Of a stretch of 64,000 bases of DNA, positions 24,939 to 33,603 are shown piece after piece. The stretch is taken from contig JAHLTZ010000018.1 in NCBI GenBank assembly GCA_025786725.1, positions 372,001 through 436,000 of the forward strand. The letters run 5' to 3'. This stretch comes from Syncephalis fuscata S228 (taxonomy: Eukaryota > Fungi > Zoopagomycota). The position numbers were made by a program, and so were the translations under genes. Positions within the stretch are counted from its first letter, which is position 1. The number at the start of each line of letters is the position of its first letter. The notes under the pieces were generated by a model. The model ran no database searches and had not been told where the DNA came from. It was given only the letters and a program-made list of their open reading frames with translations.

Positions 24939-25561
24939 ATTGGAGCGACAAACAAGAAACCTAATAATGTGGTATACCATCAGATATCATTCCGTATTTA
25001 TTTTGTTTAAATTACGACTATTTCAGAATAGCACGCGAATTGCATAGATACAAGTATGAATGACTAAAATAGTGCTGATTCTGTTGATATTCGAAACAAG
25101 CACGCTCATTAACATCTGATAACCACGCATTTCATCCATAAAAGGTTACGGTGCACATTATTCAATAAACCAAAAATAAAGTACTTATTGTAATACAGTT
25201 TATTAGTTAGCATATTACACTAGATTTTCATTATTATTATTTAAAAAGTATTATGATAATCATTCCATTGGATATTTCGTAAATAACGTCGTAATATATG
25301 AAATTTATTACTGTGAGAAAACAATTGCATAAGTGTGTAAATGATCGCCAATTACGCATGCATGTAAAGGAGAATGAGCAGTAAATATTACTCCTTGCAT
25401 CGACATTCTATTTTTCTATTAACTGTATTTTATTATATATATCTTTACATTTGTCTAATTTTTTATGTTTTCTATCACCTTATTATCTATTATATATTCT
25501 TTGGCATATATATATTTACATTTGTTTGATTGTCTATTTATTTTATTAGGCAGCCGTTACC

Positions 25562-25813
25562 ATGAAGATTTATATCACCGTTTTCTGTGCTCTTGTCGTG
25601 GTGCTTGTAATCAGTGCAGCTATGGCGGATGCCGATTCTCGTCTACTCCGTCGGGCTGTTGCTAAATCGACGAAAACAAAGACATGTATTCGTATGATTA
25701 ATGCTAATAGCGGTGTTGGCTGTCCTGGTTTTGTCCCTTCGCCTGGATGTGGTAGAATTCCTGGAGATCCCGATGCGCCATATCCTGGATGCTGTTCTAG
25801 GCCTGCTTGTTAG
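25562..25813 (+). CDS. Secreted 6-Cys peptide, SVWC-like family copy 1
   Basis: Signal peptide, LLRR dibasic site, then C-x10-CP-x6-C-x9-YPGCC-x4-C; two paralogues in the window. Confidence 0.85.
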   Translation: MKIYITVFCALVVVLVISAAMADADSRLLRRAVAKSTKTKTCIRMINANSGVGCPGFVPSPGCGRIPGDPDAPYPGCCSRPAC

Positions 25814-26560
25814 ATTGGATTTAATAGCTTGCTATGAAAAAGATTAAAGAAATAAAGCCATAATTTTTTCCAAGTTACATTATTGATACAATATGGGGCG
25901 TGCTGCAACAAAGCCGAACAAAATGAGCGTTGGGTGGTCCAGTTGACAAGATCATGTCTTGTTTCTTTGCTTCTGCCAGCTCGCCAATGCATCGCCTACA
26001 CAACCGCCGACATTGGAGCAGAGGATATAACTTTGGATATAGGCAAGCATGCGCCACAGCGAGCTAGTGGAAAGCTCGGCTGGTGTAGTTCTAGCACACC
26101 GCTCGGTGTACTTCCAGCCATGCTCAAAGACGTTGAACCTGTTTGTTCATTGACTGGACGAGTGGGCAGGTCAAAATGAGATAGCAATCACTGTAGGAAG
26201 GACATGTGGCAATTGAGACTAAAAGGCAGATGACGTCCAGTAAATTACCATCTCTACTTTCAAAATCTAATAGCTTAATAACATAATCGCTACTTATTAG
26301 TAAAAGACGCAATCCTAAATATAGTGATGCGCATTGTGATAAACCAACCAGTAACAGGATTGATAGAGATCTGCCACAAACCTTTTTTTCCTTTGCCAAG
26401 TCGCGTTTCGTCACGCGCGGCTCTTTCTCTTTTTGTTTCTCGTCTCATCCACTTTACACGCTGTCAGCTTCTGTCACCTCACCTCATCCTCGCTCCGTTA
26501 GCCTCTTCAATTCCGCTAGTATGTTTGGTACCGTTGGCATCTTTCTATCAATTCTGTACA

Positions 26561-28549
26561 ATGTCTTTTAAAGAGATTAAACAACTTCTTGGAACAGTGC
26601 TATGTACCAGCCAAGGTAAGCTCAGTCCGACAGCAATAGACACTTCTTCTCTCCTCCCATACAATTTCTATCTGCTCTGCGCCTATTGTGACATCTGCAA
26701 GCATCAAAGAGGGAACTATGAGCCGCCTCGTGTCTCACATGCCTCTCTGCTTGTCATTGCTGTCAGGCTGGCGCATCATGAGCCTAAGTGGCTCTTGTCA
26801 TTCTCTCTTTTCTCACCTTCTCGTCTTTTCTCGTTTGCGTACACGTGCCTCACTCGTTTACTCATTCGTTTTGTTTCACCGGCCCCACCTGATGGGGATT
26901 AGCCGCTCCAGTCGTCACAGCTGCTCCAGCCGCTCTAGCGAATACAGTAATCAAAGTCTGGGTCAAGCTCCTTCAAGCTGCACCAAACAGTTCACGCTTT
27001 GCGGAGCTGGACATTGATAAAATCACGAATCCCAATCAAAGCAATGATATTGCCGACCTCCGCAAAACACTTATCACCGATGTTGCTTTCACAAACAAGC
27101 TTGATGGCATAGCCTCGTCCGATCTAAAAGTCTACAACAACAACGAAGATGCTACCAACCAGATAGAGCCTATTGAAGAAGATAGTCCACTTTCAGAGCT
27201 TATTGAGACCGGGAAGGGCGATAGGAAGAGGACGCCATGATTGTTGTAGCGCCACCTCCTTCCAGTAAGTAGTGCAGGCGCGATATTGCCAGGTTACTAG
27301 TTATGAATGTTATCAGCTCTTCTCACACTTTATCCTATTTTTTCTACAGGCAGTCTTTTACTCAAACGAATGGGTGCTTTCTATGACGAGAGATCAGTAC
27401 TTCGCCTTAGACAAGAATATGAACATGTGTACAATTTTACTACTTTAAACAGTAAGTTATTTTGGCTGTTGTTAGTGGTGTGGTCTGTACTGGATGTGAA
27501 TTTGTCTAACCCGCTGGTTTTTTACAGGGCCGCGTCACTTTGAGCACACTAATGAAGTATATCCGGAGTATAACTTCTATATTGAACCCAGACAAGTCCA
27601 GGAATTTGGAGAGAACCTCCTCAAGCGCAGGTTTGTTCTTTACGATGGTCACCGCCAGAGTGGCAAGTCCACCTTTTGCCAGGCAGTGTTGCGGTGGTTT
27701 GCCGAGCATCCGAATAAGTTTCTGGAGATTACTGGTAGCCCCGTGGAAGATTTCGAGGTATACCCCGTAACCTTTGATAGTAACATTGTGATCAACCAAA
27801 CAAGCCAAGTGCAGTGCGTCTATTCTTCGCAGTTTGATGCTGGAAACAATGAGTATGCGAGAAATCGAGCTATCTGAAGGGCCACCGAACGTGGATGAAC
27901 TTGACCCTCGGTGGTTGTTGAAACATATAATTAAGGTGAGTGTTGTATATATAGTATAAAGCTCATTGACAATGGATTGATATTGACATTTGTTTGGTCA
28001 ATGCTTATTTATACAGAACTTGTCTATTCAGCGGCTTTGGGCTAGGCAATCCTTGAACGCTGGCGGATTTCCGTCAGACTATGCGTTTCAAGCCGAGTTT
28101 GGCATTATCCTTAACAGTCTGCTCCCAGAGCGTACTCAGGATTAGGCTACAGAGCCTTCCTGGAAGCCAAGAATCGCGGCCAAGACAATGGAAGACTAGA
28201 CATTCTCGTACATAATGGCCGCAACAGACCTAAATACGGCTTCAAATTGAGGGTTGATGCGACCGAAGCGGTATTTTATGAGCAATGTCGTCGTGCCGAA
28301 AAATACGCCCAAACTTACGGCTGTGCTGCGGTGTATGTAATTAATCTATGTCCCAGCTCCAGTGAACAGCTAGGCTACTTTGGAAGCAATTATGACAAAG
28401 TGGTCCCAGTGGTCGTGGCTATTGATCACGAAGGATATGAAGGTACGATACATTACGACGAGAATAATAATGATAGCATAGAGATTGTACGTCGAAATTG
28501 GGATATTGCATTTAGGGATATCGGACGAGTTAAGTCTAGCTTTTCTTAA
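26561..28549 (+). pseudogene. Crinkler (CRN)-like effector remnant: ubiquitin-like header + P-loop NTPase + PD-(D/E)xK-type nuclease
   Basis: Exon 26561-26615 splices in frame to KVWVKL..DIADLRK..L..SDLKVY..IEEDSPL..IVVAP; Walker A GHRQSGKST at 27647-27673; DYAFQAEF..EAK..RLDILV..YGFKL. Frameshifts are present and most of the NTPase is deleted near 27800. Confidence 0.72.
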
Positions 28550-28823
28550 TAAAGGTATTAAACGAGTTTAGCTTTCAACGCTGTTGCTGAGTTGTTTGGC
28601 AAATACAAATAAAAGTGTATTTAAAGACAGATTCAATTGGTAAAACATTTGATGTTAAAGCTAGAGAAGTTATTAAAAGATTATTGTTTTTATTGAATAA
28701 GGTAATGTTTAGTATTTATAAGAGTACTTGTTAGTTAGATAATGAATAGTCATAGTGTTTAATGGTAATGGCTAACAATAACGACAATATTATTGATCAT
28801 ATGGCACTTGACCATAAAATTAA

Positions 28824-30424
28824 GGGAAATTAGAAAATGGACCGTTTTCAATTTTATTAAACTTATTTAATAAGTAACAATAAGCTGTTTTTAGCTTTAC
28901 TTATTGAAATACACCGTTTAAAAGTTTACCAAATGTCTACCAAAATACTTAAAAAGCTATATTTAACAGTATTGCAAACTGAAGATTGCTGTTGACGAGT
29001 TTAAACTTGTTAACAATTGCAATTTTAAGAGTAAGAATAGTGATTCAACAAGATTACAGCTTATTTGTTCTCATGAATACCGTTCCAGAAATAAATGCCA
29101 ATTTGTTTTGACTGCCAAAAAGCAAAAAACTGGCCTAGTAAAGATTACCTAGTACAATATTAAACATTTGAATGTTGTTCATATAAATCTAATAATAATA
29201 ATATTAAATCTATTACTAATCTATTACAAATGATGTTGCTACATTTCAAATATGAAATTAAAAAATGTACAAGTGAAAGTATTAAGTACATATTTGATTA
29301 TTTAATATACAATACCAATTGTAATATCTCAACAGAAGTTGATATTAACAGCAATATCAATTCTTTTTTATTTATTAAATATTACCTTATCAAATTCAAG
29401 CATTTTAATCCTGGCTCTGTTCAGTACTTTTTGCAGAATCAGTCTGTTAATTTTAAAATGGCATTTTATGTCCTTCATCGTCTATTAAAGCTTACCAGTA
29501 TACTCGTAAAGTACTGGTAATTGACGGTTGCCATCTAAGGTTTTCTTATGGCGCTGTTGCTCTTGATGCAGTTGTTAAAGATGGAAATAACGATATTTTA
29601 CCTTTGGTTGTTGCTATAGTATTTCATAAAATAAAAACAACTGGGTTTATTTTCCTAAACATTTATCAAATTCAATACCTGAATTAAGTATTCACAAGCT
29701 CAAGGATTGTTAACTAATGATATCTATTTGTTGTATAAATCAACATTAACTGACGCCAATAATTATATAATTAACGATTATTCTGATACCAAATTTCAAG
29801 CTAATGATACTAAGTCTGGTATTGACAGAACAGTAGATTTAACTGCAAAAACCTGCACGTGTGGATACTGGGAAGAGATGAAGTTTGTTTGTAGTCATGT
29901 GGCAATAATTTTGAAGGATTGTAGGCTTTCATTAGATGATTTTATTGATAAATCTTACACCATTGATTATTTAAACAAATTATATGCTCCAGCAATTTGC
30001 CTGGTTGAAATGGAATCAATTACTGCAGATGTTTTGTGTTTGCCGCCGAAAATAACAAAGAAAGCCGGTAGACCAAGAGTTAAAAGAATCAGATGTTGTG
30101 GTGAGGCTTTGGAAGCCTCCCAACGATATACTTGTCACAATTGTAGATTAAAAGGACACAATACAAGAACATGCTCTGTAAACACTAGTATTAGTAACAT
30201 TGAAACAAACACTTTATTGAAGAGCAAATACAAACTACTAATGAAACGGCTATTAAGAAAAGAAGACACGTCATTAAAGAATGTTTAATTTGTGATAAAG
30301 TCATTGCAAGAAAACGGTGTGTGGAGCAAATAAATAATAATTTTATTAATAAACAACTTAATAATTTTAAAAAAAGGAATCTATTGTGGTGAAATTTAAA
30401 AGCAGTGTATTTTTCAAAAATTCT
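28824..30424 (+). mobile_element. Degenerate MULE/Mutator DNA transposon
   Basis: MuDR-like (KIAVDEF..SDSTRLQLIC..CQFVLTA), transposase core (VIDGCHL..DGNNDILPLVVAIV), SWIM (VDL..TCTCGYW....VCSH), GRPRVKR, knuckle CHNCRLKGHNTRTC; stops and deletions present; termini approximate. Confidence 0.85.
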
Positions 30425-30644
30425 TATTGTCAATTATCAGTATATATATATGTTGATTGATTAATTGAACAGATATAATAGCAAATAATATTTAGTTACT
30501 TGAAATCCTCAATAATAATTATGATTTAAATAACACTGCTTATTTATAGTTTTGAAATAAGATAATAAGCAAATTAGTATCATTAAATCGGCAAGCACTC
30601 ATTGTAATATAATTTATTAACTAACATATTAACATAAGCTTTTA

Positions 30645-31544
30645 TTATAGTTTATTCTTTATCATGGATTGTGCAATAAAAGCATCCCAGTCAGGACGGC
30701 GTTTTGCTAAAAATTCACCAATACCGTATGCTGCCTCCTCTGAAGTTAACATACGTGTAAACACTTGTTTCACTAACTTGGTTGCTTTATCTTCTTCGAT
30801 GGACGCTGTTGATCCAAAAGTTGCAGGCTCACCGCCACCTATAACAGACACGAGTTGCTTGGCGTCGGCCATAGCCAATGGAGCATTGTTGCGCAATAAA
30901 CTAATATAATGAGCTACTACTGCATCCAAGTCATCTACACTATCGACAGTTTTAGTTAAAAAGCCAGGCCATTCGCGTAGTGCCTCCACTGCAGTAACCA
31001 GGCGTGCCGTCATCATCAGTTCTCGTGATCGTACGGGACCTAGATCCGGAACAATATACCGAGCAATCACCGCGGGCACCAAGCCACGCTCAACTTCTGA
31101 CAAACGAAAATAAACATCTTTTCCGGGCTGATCGACAGCTTTGGCAGGTGACTGCTTCGAGATGGCAATCCGAATATCAGCACAGAAAATGAGGCCAACT
31201 CCACCACCAAGAGCCGGTCCTTGAATACGAGCAATAACTGGCTTTGGACAATGCCGTATCGCATCAAACATCTCCAGCGCGCCAACCACCGGATCTTTGG
31301 CTGCTTTAGAGCTTTCCGGTTCGCTGTTGGCTTGTGCCAGGTCCATACCAGTGCAAAAATACTGACCTGCTCCGGTAAGTATTGCTACGCGAACGACAGG
31401 GTCGGAGGCAAGCTTACGAAAGGCATGCGTTAGCTCATCTCTCATACGAGGTGAAATGGCATTGGCTCTCTTGGGCCTGTTTAGCGTTACAGTAGCCACG
31501 CCGTTTGCTACTGTGTAGATAATATCGTGATATACGATGTCCAT
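30645..31544 (-). CDS. Enoyl-CoA hydratase/crotonase, methylglutaconyl/isohexenylglutaconyl-CoA hydratase-like, intronless
   Basis: VATVTLNRPKRANA, FCTGMDL, PKPVIARIQGPALGGGVGL, FRLSEVERGLVP, EAAYGIGEFLAKRRPDW; likely start MDIVY; ends NKL (PTS1-like). Confidence 0.9.
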   Translation of the reverse strand: MDIVYHDIIYTVANGVATVTLNRPKRANAISPRMRDELTHAFRKLASDPVVRVAILTGAGQYFCTGMDLAQANSEPESSKAAKDPVVGALEMFDAIRHCPKPVIARIQGPALGGGVGLIFCADIRIAISKQSPAKAVDQPGKDVYFRLSEVERGLVPAVIARYIVPDLGPVRSRELMMTARLVTAVEALREWPGFLTKTVDSVDDLDAVVAHYISLLRNNAPLAMADAKQLVSVIGGGEPATFGSTASIEEDKATKLVKQVFTRMLTSEEAAYGIGEFLAKRRPDWDAFIAQSMIKNKL

Positions 31545-31812
31545 TGTTGTGAGAACGCCAATTGCGTATGCATGCAAATGAAATACTAAATACGTGCACG
31601 TGCAGATGAAAACGCTAATAGTTGTGCGTGTGTGTAAAGGAGAATAAGCCACAACTATTGCTCTACTTCTTTCTACTTTCTACTATTTAGTATATACATC
31701 TTTACACCTGCCTATTGTTTATTTATTCTTATAATCTACACTATTTATTACTTTTAGTATATATATATATACTTGTCTACTTGTCTATTTGTTTTATTAA
31801 CCAGTCATCATC

Positions 31813-32151
31813 ATGAAGGTTTCTATTGCTGTTGTCTGTGCTCTTGTTGTAGTGTTTGTAGTCAACACGGCTACAGTGGATGCCAAACGTCATTTGCTTC
31901 GTCGAGCTGATGCTACATCGACGGGCAAAAAGGAATGTGTTGGTAAAAATAGTGATGGCACTCTTAGTCAATGTCCTCGGTTCAAGATGAGTTCTAATTG
32001 TCGTCTTGTTTACGATAAACCCGATGGTTTATATCCTGAATGCTGTCCCCGTGTTACTTGTCATGCTGAGGCTCATGCTGAAGCTCACGATGAAGCTCAT
32101 GCCGAAGCTCATGCCAAACAGCAGAAAGAGGCTGATCAACCAAAGCCGTAG
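31813..32151 (+). CDS. Secreted 6-Cys peptide, SVWC-like family copy 2, with a His-Ala-Glu-Ala repeat tail
   Basis: Signal peptide, LLRR, C-x11-CP-x6-C-x10-YPECCP-x3-C, then HAEA-type repeats. Confidence 0.87.
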   Translation: MKVSIAVVCALVVVFVVNTATVDAKRHLLRRADATSTGKKECVGKNSDGTLSQCPRFKMSSNCRLVYDKPDGLYPECCPRVTCHAEAHAEAHDEAHAEAHAKQQKEADQPKP

Positions 32152-32668
32152 TTGATTTTAAGTCACATTACCAATACAATCCAAGTATATTTAATGGAAA
32201 CAGACATATTAGCAATTATGACCTTTAATCTGCTTGCATAACAAATTTCAATTACTTTATAGATTTGTTTTACCAATTAATCTATAGTATTACTGCTTAG
32301 ATAATACAGTTGTATTTCATTTTTGTTTATAAGTCAATCAGTTGTATGGCAAATAAATATACTGTATTTACCATTTAATTTTACATATTGCATATCATTA
32401 TTGCCATTTATCAATATATGATAGTTGAATAGATACAATAATAAGCAATAGTAACTATAATTTAACTGACATTTTATTTATTTATTTAATAATTTTGGAA
32501 TAAAATGATAAACAAGTTTGGTATTATATGAAACAACCACGCTTACTCACTTCTAACTATGCAATCTCTATAAAAGATTGTTCAATAACCTGAAAACAAA
32601 GAACATACTGTGGTATGATTTATTAAACAGCATATTAAACTGAATTATCACTATTAAATGCTTAACAA

Positions 32669-32770
32669 TTATTGTAGTTTATTCTTATTATCGTTGCCTC
32701 TCTTGGGCCTATTAAGCATAGTAGTGGACATACCCTTTGCTATTGTGTAAAGCGAACATTGTAATACATG
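32669..32770 (-). pseudogene. Internally deleted copy of the enoyl-CoA hydratase gene
   Basis: YTIAKGMSTTMLNRPKRG (cf. YTVANGVATVTLNRPKRA) joins almost directly to KNKL, the hydratase C-terminus; flanks align with 30470-30660 and 31450-31812. Confidence 0.8.
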
Positions 32771-33025
32771 CGGCCCTTTGCTATGCAAAAATAGCTGCAT
32801 AAGCGTGCGAATAAGAATGCCAGTTATGTATGTTTGCAAAGAAAAAGGGGCCACAACCATTGCTCTATGCCTTTCTACCTTTGACTGTTTAGTATAAATA
32901 GCTTTACATTTTCCTGCATGTTTATCTGTTTTATTAACTTACATTCTACTTTCTTCTTTCTACTGCATATTGCATCTGTTTGCACTCGTTTGTTTGTTTG
33001 CCCGTTTTATTAGCCAGTCATCACC

Positions 33026-33313
33026 ATGAAGATTTATATCGCTGTCGTCTGTGCTCTTGCTATGGTACTTGTAGCCAGTACGGCTATGGTGGATGCCAAC
33101 TCTCGTCTACTCCGTCGGGCGACTGCTACATATGCGGGAAAGAAGCAATGTATTAGTAAGGATAGTAATGGTGGTGTTCTTGGCTGTCCTATGTATAAGC
33201 TAAAGGCTGGATGCTACATGACTTCTGGCAATCCCGATGCTGAATATCCTGATTGCTGCCCTCAGCCTGTTTGTCCTAAATCCTACGAGGAACAACAGGA
33301 AGAAACGGATTAA
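33026..33313 (+). CDS. Secreted 6-Cys peptide, SVWC-like family copy 3
   Basis: Signal peptide, LLRR, C-x11-CP-x6-C-x10-YPDCCP-x3-C, acidic tail; 3' flank homologous to copy 2. Confidence 0.87.
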   Translation: MKIYIAVVCALAMVLVASTAMVDANSRLLRRATATYAGKKQCISKDSNGGVLGCPMYKLKAGCYMTSGNPDAEYPDCCPQPVCPKSYEEQQEETD

Positions 33314-33603
33314 TCAACATCAAAGTTGTCTTCCAAGTTACATCACAATACAGTCTACATATATCCGATGGAAACAATATGCAATAGTAACTACAACCTT
33401 TAATCTGCTTGCATAACATATTTAGTCTAATTTCCATATCTATTCACCAATTAATCTACGGTATTATTGTCTAGACAATGCAATTGTAGTTTAATTGCTC
33501 ATTAAATCAATCAATTGTACAATAATAAATACAAATTATTTATTATTTACTCTACTTTATATCATAATCATTATATTTTATTAATTTCATTCAATTTATA
33601 ATA

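Follow-up and report, generated by a model that had tools for sequence, protein, structure and literature searches.

Three small intronless genes in a 64,000-nucleotide stretch of the Syncephalis fuscata S228 genome (GenBank assembly GCA_025786725.1, contig JAHLTZ010000018.1, positions 372,001 to 436,000; below, the window) encode peptides with a predicted signal peptide, a dibasic processing site and six cysteines in the mature part. The peptides are very probably homologues of the arthropod single-domain von Willebrand factor C (SVWC) proteins from the second cysteine on, shortened at the N-terminus. With a probability of roughly 0.6, we regard the three genes as a small family of secreted, truncated SVWC peptides that would be matured by a Kex2-type protease and serve as extracellular binders in a mycoparasite. 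S. fuscata, a member of the Zoopagomycota, parasitizes Mucorales and Mortierella; Syncephalis is biotrophic and depends on a living host. SVWC has been described as an eight-cysteine family found mainly in arthropods (PMC13115929, PMC11515477).

The first 83 residues of the three peptides align without gaps (coordinates are given in Table 1). Judged by eye, each N-terminus consists of Met-Lys, about 16 hydrophobic residues and a small-x-small site; this hydrophobic signal is followed by a seven-residue pro-piece ending in L-L-R-R and by a 42-residue domain with six cysteines. Invariant across the three peptides are L-L-R-R at residues 28–31, which forms a dibasic site with an aliphatic P4 residue between pro-piece and mature peptide in 3/3 genes, the six cysteines of the mature part, the proline after the second of them (CP) and the YPxCC motif, the spacing being C-x11-CP-x6-C-x10-YP-x-CC-x4-C. 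An additional invariant cysteine lies inside the signal peptide of all three. At the DNA level, a repeat family of 217 nucleotides (nt) with 70–74% identity spans the three genes, beginning 52 nt 5′ of the ATG, and further short repeats up- and downstream are common to them. In pairwise comparison, leader residues 1–31 are 58–74% identical with a ratio of nonsynonymous to synonymous substitutions (dN/dS) of 0.42–0.47, while the 42-codon domain is only 33–40% identical with a dN/dS of 0.80–1.15, its cysteines being fixed; both ratios come from short sequences. A preliminary description of the window, made from the sequence alone, had reported three intronless open reading frames (ORFs) with a common signal peptide, L-L-R-R and six-cysteine pattern, and the coordinates and the gap-free alignment agree with it; its observation that signal and pro regions are more conserved than the residues between the cysteines was borne out by identity, and also by the dN/dS comparison of leader and mature part that it had proposed.

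Transcription was assessed with the assembled contigs of one public run over positions 27401–33400, in which about half of the region's sampled words were present. Because two GT..AG joints were found in a neighboring spliced gene and intergenic bins were essentially uncovered, the run behaves as RNA. A discrete 359-nt RNA contig (32988–33346) lies over gene 3 with 0 differences and no joint, which shows that this gene is transcribed without splicing and that its ORF of 95 amino acids (aa) is the correct model. The deposited S. fuscata model of this peptide is 77 aa long, as 18 codons including L-L-R-R were taken out as an intron, and otherwise identical; it is ruled out by the unspliced contig. 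For another deposited S. fuscata protein, the identity to a locus in the assembly is 100%. Gene 2 is covered without differences by an RNA contig (30735–32350) that includes the divergent hydratase gene. The transcription check suggested in the preliminary description was thus positive for genes 3 and 2, the two that lie in the region covered.

SVWC (PF15430) was the sole Pfam family under E 0.01 for the peptides, the match covering profile positions 24–66 of 66. Genes 2 and 3 reached 30.4 and 30.2 bits, respectively, at a gathering cut-off of 27; the three E-values were 4.7e-7, 5.3e-7, and 0.017, and a paralogue on contig C1 scored 32.5 bits. Canonical VWC (PF00093) gave no Pfam match to the peptides even at E <= 10, and membership in that family was ruled out on this ground and by the cysteine number, six only vs. 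ten. The signature C-P ... C ... G-x-P ... Y-P-x-C-C-P ... C is invariant or nearly so in ten domains of the genome and aligns to the arthropod consensus. A profile of ten domains from the genome was searched exhaustively against 1.84 billion representatives, which yielded 49 proteins at E <= 0.001, including arthropod proteins named La1-like, scoloptoxin-16-like and HsVx1, as well as long metagenome proteins with tandem SVWC domains. For the profile-profile comparison, the arthropod side consisted of ten single-domain proteins of the La1-like, scoloptoxin-16 or HsVx1 type, seven of them with arthropod names on record; against this set the fungal profile gave a probability of 98.7% and an E-value of 2.8e-16 over 46 columns. 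The best-scoring relatives in the exhaustive search (P0002–P0007) were unnamed proteins of 355–751 aa on ENA metagenome contigs, with 5–9 tandem full eight-cysteine SVWC domains.

Structure comparison led to the same family. A sequence search of solved structures (PDB) returned CirpT1 as the sole match (E 1e-4). The AlphaFold (AF2) model of mature peptide 3 had a mean predicted local distance difference test (pLDDT) score of 75, with 82–85 in the core, and Foldseek with this model found CirpT1 at probabilities of 0.99 and 0.96, the next row being at 0.03. In a fold search independent of Foldseek, CirpT1 was the only one of 48,161 chains with Z >= 2 (Z 3.4, root mean square deviation (rmsd) 2.3, 48 residues, chain positions 35–87). 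The top three rows of a shape search in the ESM Atlas were arthropod clusters with template modeling (TM) scores of 0.58–0.62 and rmsd of 1.7–2.8 over 51–55 residues; one has PF15430, and the other two bear the automatic name "Single domain-containing protein"; next came a VWC-containing CRIM1-like cluster, a weak match at TM 0.38. A protein-language-model look-up pointed to arthropod SVWC clusters as well, at sub-threshold scores of 0.78. As every method gave the SVWC family and nothing else, homology was accepted and convergence rejected; with profile and fold results concordant, a chance or convergent resemblance was ruled out. The SVWC likeness claimed in the preliminary description therefore holds for the C-terminal two thirds of the domain, by Pfam, profile-profile comparison and fold, and the AlphaFold and Foldseek analysis that it had called for gave CirpT1 as the sole solved match and arthropod SVWC clusters by shape.

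The profile-profile alignment also shows what is missing from the fungal domain. Its first cysteine, in the context C-[IV]-K-x-T, pairs with arthropod C2, and the whole part N-terminal to C2, with C1 and the hairpin of the conserved Trp (about profile positions 1–23), is absent; in the mature peptide only about ten residues stand ahead of the first cysteine. At the position of arthropod C3 the fungal profile has an acidic or polar residue beside a four-residue deletion. The six invariant mature cysteines thus compare with eight in SVWC, C1 and C3 being without counterpart, as expected from the earlier suggestion that one cysteine pair had been lost. In the canonical VWC disulfide pattern C1 partners C3, and on this pairing the loss of both would remove exactly one bridge and leave three disulfides, with C2-C6, C4-C7 and C5-C8 (arthropod numbering) as the expected pairs.

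We propose that the precursors would enter the endoplasmic reticulum (ER), where signal peptidase would cut after a VDA-type site, that a Golgi kexin would then cut after RR, and that a peptide of about 50–80 residues with three disulfides would be released. The retained fold, a connecting strand plus the flat C-terminal subdomain, may bind non-enzymatically outside the cell at the parasite-host interface, with a host protein or a wall glycan as target, and the surface between the cysteines could be diversifying under pressure from that target. In CirpT1 the C-terminal domain forms most of the target interface (PMC6955305); binding to yeast cells and to microbial glycans, beta-1,3-glucan among them, is on record for insect SVWC proteins (PMC11515477). 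Since the retained part corresponds to the main contact surface of CirpT1 and insect SVWC proteins bind glycans without killing, the role of an effector that binds outside the cell, where parasite and host meet, is by analogy a reasonable candidate, put forward tentatively and with less assurance than the family assignment.

Several points weigh against this interpretation as a whole. Gene 1 scores 15.8 bits to Pfam SVWC, under the cut-off of 27. The model of peptide 3 is of moderate quality (pLDDT 75) and the absolute structural scores are low (Foldseek E 0.067, Z 3.4); they are modest because the domain has only about 45 residues. With about 42 codons per comparison, the dN/dS values are noisy and indicative only. 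The RNA data are assembled contigs for genes 2 and 3 only, which give neither levels nor conditions, and gene 2 is covered by a contig that it has in common with the hydratase rather than by a discrete transcript. The signal peptide was assigned by eye, and ER entry, signal cleavage, kexin cleavage and peptide release are all steps that we infer.

The leader of the three genes proved to be part of a much larger system. A genome search with the three-protein alignment gave 150 scored matches among 354 candidates, all significant and most at positions 1–33 only, so that the leader module is counted at at least 150 loci (354 protein-level and 261 DNA-level candidates). About 50 loci were translated, and a near-identical leader, MKLSIAVVC...VDA(K/N)PALVRR, precedes very different sequences; related leader loci terminate in L-V-R-R or I-R-R. 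The 100-nt leader exon has >= 90% nucleotide identity in the 40/40 loci scored (of 261 candidates). Homology between leader loci typically starts 100–600 nt 5′ of the ATG and ends, in intronless genes, at +92 to +98, which is the RR site. The three SVWC genes have only −40 to +91 in common with the module, at 71–80% nucleotide identity (gene 1, 72–76% from −3 to +70/+91; gene 2, 71–78% from −40 to +95; gene 3, 75–80% from −41 to +91), and from this limit and this identity their leader is taken to be an older, diverged copy. The conserved leader is therefore no peculiarity of the family but a diverged copy of a module present at the at least 150 loci, and the stronger conservation of signal and pro regions relative to the mature part is explained by the separate constraint on this genome-wide module. 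Only about four leader-bearing genes are present in the deposited annotation, most being missing or mis-modeled. A kexin-type gene was found on contig C317 (about 797.9–798.9 kb), with a P_proprotein domain (58–60 bits) directly 3′ of a Peptidase_S8 fragment. As this gene, S8 followed by P domain, is present, processing at RR is plausible; together with the invariant L-L-R-R, it sustains the earlier identification of RR as a Kex2-type site, cleavage itself being a prediction.

What stands behind the leader varies widely. Among the cargoes are several further cysteine frameworks, Pro-rich proteins, and peptides that are rich in Lys/His and carry KR sites internally. The commonest sequence behind the leader is a GTATGT splice donor one base past the RR codons. 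Four loci (L041, L042, L078 and L037, at G000:C1:523550, C157:366334, C350:458180 and C350:120334) illustrate this variety behind the same leader, with a 111-aa precursor in which several KR sites flank segments rich in Lys/His and of amphipathic appearance, a 148-aa protein rich in Pro, and short peptides that contain additional KR/RR sites. Many leader exons are followed by arrays of units that resemble introns, each about 78 nt long (GTAAGT ... TAATAG) and only 3 or 6 nt from the next, with 21 units in a row over 1.8 kb at L089. Read in phase 1, the putative micro-exons would encode cysteine-containing peptides that resemble the start of intronless leader-bearing paralogues (C-x2/3-C). The leader system with its putative micro-exon arrays is a more surprising matter than the SVWC peptides themselves. 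It might be that the mini-SVWC peptides are a branch of a secretome defined by this leader, in which the upstream, signal and pro module was repeatedly joined, up to the Kex2 site, to unrelated mature modules (cysteine frameworks, KR-processed Lys/His-rich peptides, peptides of 3-nt micro-exons), and that the SVWC module came from a non-fungal source, an arthropod or another soil eukaryote; we consider this broader scenario doubtful at present.

The three genes are also not the whole of the SVWC-type family in this genome, as the wording "family of three" in the preliminary description had implied. A six-frame search with PF15430 gave 16 matches at about 12 loci, representing about six gene types, and all 16 begin at profile position 21 or later, none including the N-terminal half. 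Peptide 1 has two more copies, on contigs C361 and C97, that are about 96% identical over 2.7 kb; the C361 copy (C361:608217-608474) differs at 1/252 coding bases vs. about 3.6% in the flanks. The other types are a 100-aa gene on contig C1, an 82-aa gene on C201 and C24, and, on C351 and C24, proteins of two or three tandem modules with charged Pro/Lys/Glu spacers and no RR site, plus a fragment. Several of the SVWC-like loci (the peptide 1 copies, and the tandem-module genes of C351 vs. C24) are 96–99% identical over 2–3 kb between contigs. Such near-identical copies on different contigs may stem from recent segmental duplication or from haplotypes that were left unmerged.

Nor is the six-cysteine form special to this fungus. 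It was also found in S. plumigaleata and a similar metagenomic protein, in Beauveria brongniartii, asiatica, mimosiformis and gryllotalpidicola, which were the only ascomycetes found, and in the dictyostelids Cavenderia fasciculata and Heterostelium album. Several of these relatives are auto-named "Single domain-containing protein" after PF15430 and the deposited S. fuscata model has a precomputed PF15430 tag; the databases therefore already contain the SVWC link. Literature searches on fungal SVWC, on Beauveria and on Syncephalis secretomes found no published description, and no paper on the six-cysteine proteins of Beauveria and the dictyostelids. Word-based protein searches gave almost nothing apart from the genome's own models, which made the exhaustive profile search necessary. 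A domain tree of 72 domains and 56 columns with fungal, amoebal and arthropod forms left 45/68 inner branches unresolved, with no monophyletic group and no donor that could be named. The phylogeny proposed in the preliminary description was obtained, but because of this lack of resolution horizontal transfer and deep ancestry could not be separated. The patchy distribution, with a mycoparasite, an insect pathogen and soil amoebae as bearers, hints at transfer and no more; convergence, the third origin that had been considered, is unlikely given the profile score (E 2.8e-16).

Among other functions, the mature peptides could be antifungal toxins that damage or arrest the hyphae of the Mucorales or Mortierella host, or suppress competing microbes. 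The genes are small, cysteine-rich, fast-changing and, as far as assembled contigs can tell, apparently abundantly transcribed, and by protein name relatives are plentiful in scorpion and centipede venoms. To our knowledge, no target or toxicity has been established for La1-type venom peptides, which we count against a toxin, as we do the biotrophic habit of Syncephalis with its need for a living host. The peptides are neither markedly cationic nor amphipathic, two having acidic tails. The housefly SVWC peptide WHIS1 is reported to inhibit both the growth of Candida and its formation of hyphae (PMC11169590), but another housefly SVWC protein bound microbes without killing activity (PMC11515477). 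On balance we consider a toxin role unlikely.

A structural or cross-linking module in the parasite's own wall or adhesion system appears more improbable still. The single-domain genes would then encode reduced forms of the tandem-module proteins, and the paralogues on C351 and C24, with two or three modules, charged spacers and no RR site, would fit, as would one dictyostelid homologue that lies at the end of a 727-aa repeat-rich protein. The three genes of the window, however, carry a processing site predicted to free a small peptide, and inspection of the translations revealed no glycosylphosphatidylinositol (GPI), Ser/Thr-rich or wall-anchoring features.

Self-signaling by cytokine- or pheromone-like peptides, by analogy with Vago, is very unlikely. 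In fungi, peptide signals usually derive from precursors processed by Kex2. Arthropod SVWC/Vago proteins are secreted signals (review, PMC13115929). Signal-receptor pairs, however, are usually constrained, whereas here the domains are 33–40% identical with dN/dS near 1, and no receptor candidate is known. That the SVWC resemblance is convergent or a chance cysteine pattern in non-functional ORFs is hardly credible: short cysteine-rich motifs may inflate profile scores, and gene 1 reaches only 15.8 bits, but many non-cysteine positions agree (CP, G-x-P, A-x-YP-x-CCP, and the C-[IV]-K-x-T of the first cysteine), fold searches give SVWC-type proteins only, and the ORFs are transcribed (genes 2 and 3) and conserved in paralogues and a second species.

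Around the peptide genes, the enoyl-CoA hydratase gene that diverges from gene 2 belongs to a duplicated unit, not to the peptide system. N-terminal remnants of the hydratase lie divergently 5′ of gene 3 (32693–32845, minus strand, E 3e-5), and a weak one 5′ of gene 1 (25246–25317, minus strand, E 0.016); because of these remnants, the duplicated unit is taken to consist of the hydratase 5′ end and a peptide gene. RNA contigs over a spliced gene at 27401–28600 have GT..AG joints over 27452–27527 (76 nt) and about 27934–28014 (81 nt), and several of them differ by 1–5%, which suggests expressed paralogues or alleles. Between this gene and the hydratase, a 193-aa ORF (29707–30285, plus strand) contains a SWIM zinc finger (24.1 bits) and is probably the tail of a Mutator-like element (MULE)-type transposase remnant.

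Table 1. Positions of the peptide genes, their parts and related features; plain numbers refer to the window, with position 1 as its first letter, and prefixed ones to contigs of the assembly.
Feature	Position	Strand	Basis or remark
Peptide gene 1	25562..25813	+	83 aa, intronless ORF, stop codon included
Peptide gene 2	31813..32151	+	112 aa, intronless ORF, stop codon included
Peptide gene 3	33026..33313	+	95 aa, intronless ORF, stop codon included
Leader of gene 1, codons 1-31 (predicted signal peptide and short pro-piece to LLRR)	25562..25654	+	three-protein alignment
Leader of gene 2, codons 1-31	31813..31905	+	alignment, nucleotide comparison with leader loci
Leader of gene 3, codons 1-31	33026..33118	+	alignment, nucleotide comparison with leader loci
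Six-Cys mini-SVWC domain of gene 1 (from the first Cys to the last)	25685..25810	+	alignment, Pfam, profile comparison
Six-Cys mini-SVWC domain of gene 2	31936..32061	+	alignment, Pfam, profile comparison
Six-Cys mini-SVWC domain of gene 3 (the modeled one)	33149..33274	+	AF2 model, matches to CirpT1 and arthropod SVWC
His/Glu/Ala-rich periodic tail, gene 2 only	32062..32148	+	translation
Acidic tail of gene 3	33275..33310	+	translation
AT-rich upstream repeat (promoter region), common to all three genes	25412..25546; 31669-31797; 32871-32934	+ (first copy)	DNA repeat family
Enoyl-CoA hydratase gene, divergent neighbor of gene 2	30648..31652	-	Pfam ECH_1, 133.8 bits
Copy of peptide 1 on contig C97	C97:8153-8410		
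Example leader loci (L032-L086)	G000:C1:475325-475424; C157:314931-315027; C318:62403-62502		
Micro-exon array loci (putative)	L089 (G000:C235:301500-304500); L092 (C135:462000-464450); L088 (C154:2300-5700); L040; L044		

The peptides represent a distinct SVWC form, with six cysteines and no hairpin, that is expressed in a mycoparasitic zygomycete and is also found among social amoebae and in one ascomycete genus of insect pathogens. With about 45 residues and three predicted disulfides they offer a minimal version of the fold for structure-function work, and they raise the question of whether the retained flat subdomain, the target-binding face of CirpT1, is a general protein or glycan binder in antagonistic interactions. 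The leader module, in turn, points to how a little-studied parasite builds a large and diverse set of secreted peptides.

Compared with arthropod SVWC proteins (PF15430: Drosophila Vago, scorpion La1-like, scoloptoxin-16, insect pattern-recognition SVWC), the fungal peptides have the same small single-domain form, with homology from C2 to C8, and the shape predicted for peptide 3 is the same; they differ by six cysteines instead of eight, by the absence of C1 and the Trp hairpin, by the replacement of C3, by the Kex2-type pro-piece, and by being encoded in a zygomycete mycoparasite. The uncharacterized proteins of Beauveria and the dictyostelids (for instance B. brongniartii OAA38511, Cavenderia DFA_08872, Heterostelium PPL_03836) likewise have a signal peptide followed by the truncated domain with six cysteines, and they match PF15430 at 22–30 bits over profile positions of about 20–66, but they are without the RR pro-piece and without the leader of the S. 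fuscata genes. CirpT1, a tick complement inhibitor of the 8.9 kDa family (PDB 6RPT, 6RQJ), is the only solved match by both sequence and fold; its matched residues 35–87 are the strand and the flat VWC-like C-terminal domain that binds C5_MG4 (PMC6955305), while its bulky N-terminal beta-sandwich is missing in the fungal peptides and its target, vertebrate C5, is irrelevant for a mycoparasite. Canonical VWC/chordin-like domains (PF00093) are the parent fold, with ten cysteines and the motifs C2xxC3xC4 and C8C9xxC10, unlike the six-cysteine peptides. Cone-snail conotoxins and fungal Kex2-processed peptides follow the same gene logic of conserved signal and pro regions, a dibasic site and a fast-changing cysteine-rich mature part; the likeness lies in the architecture alone and does not extend to the sequence, and the conserved module of Syncephalis in addition takes in several hundred bases 5′ of the ATG at many loci.

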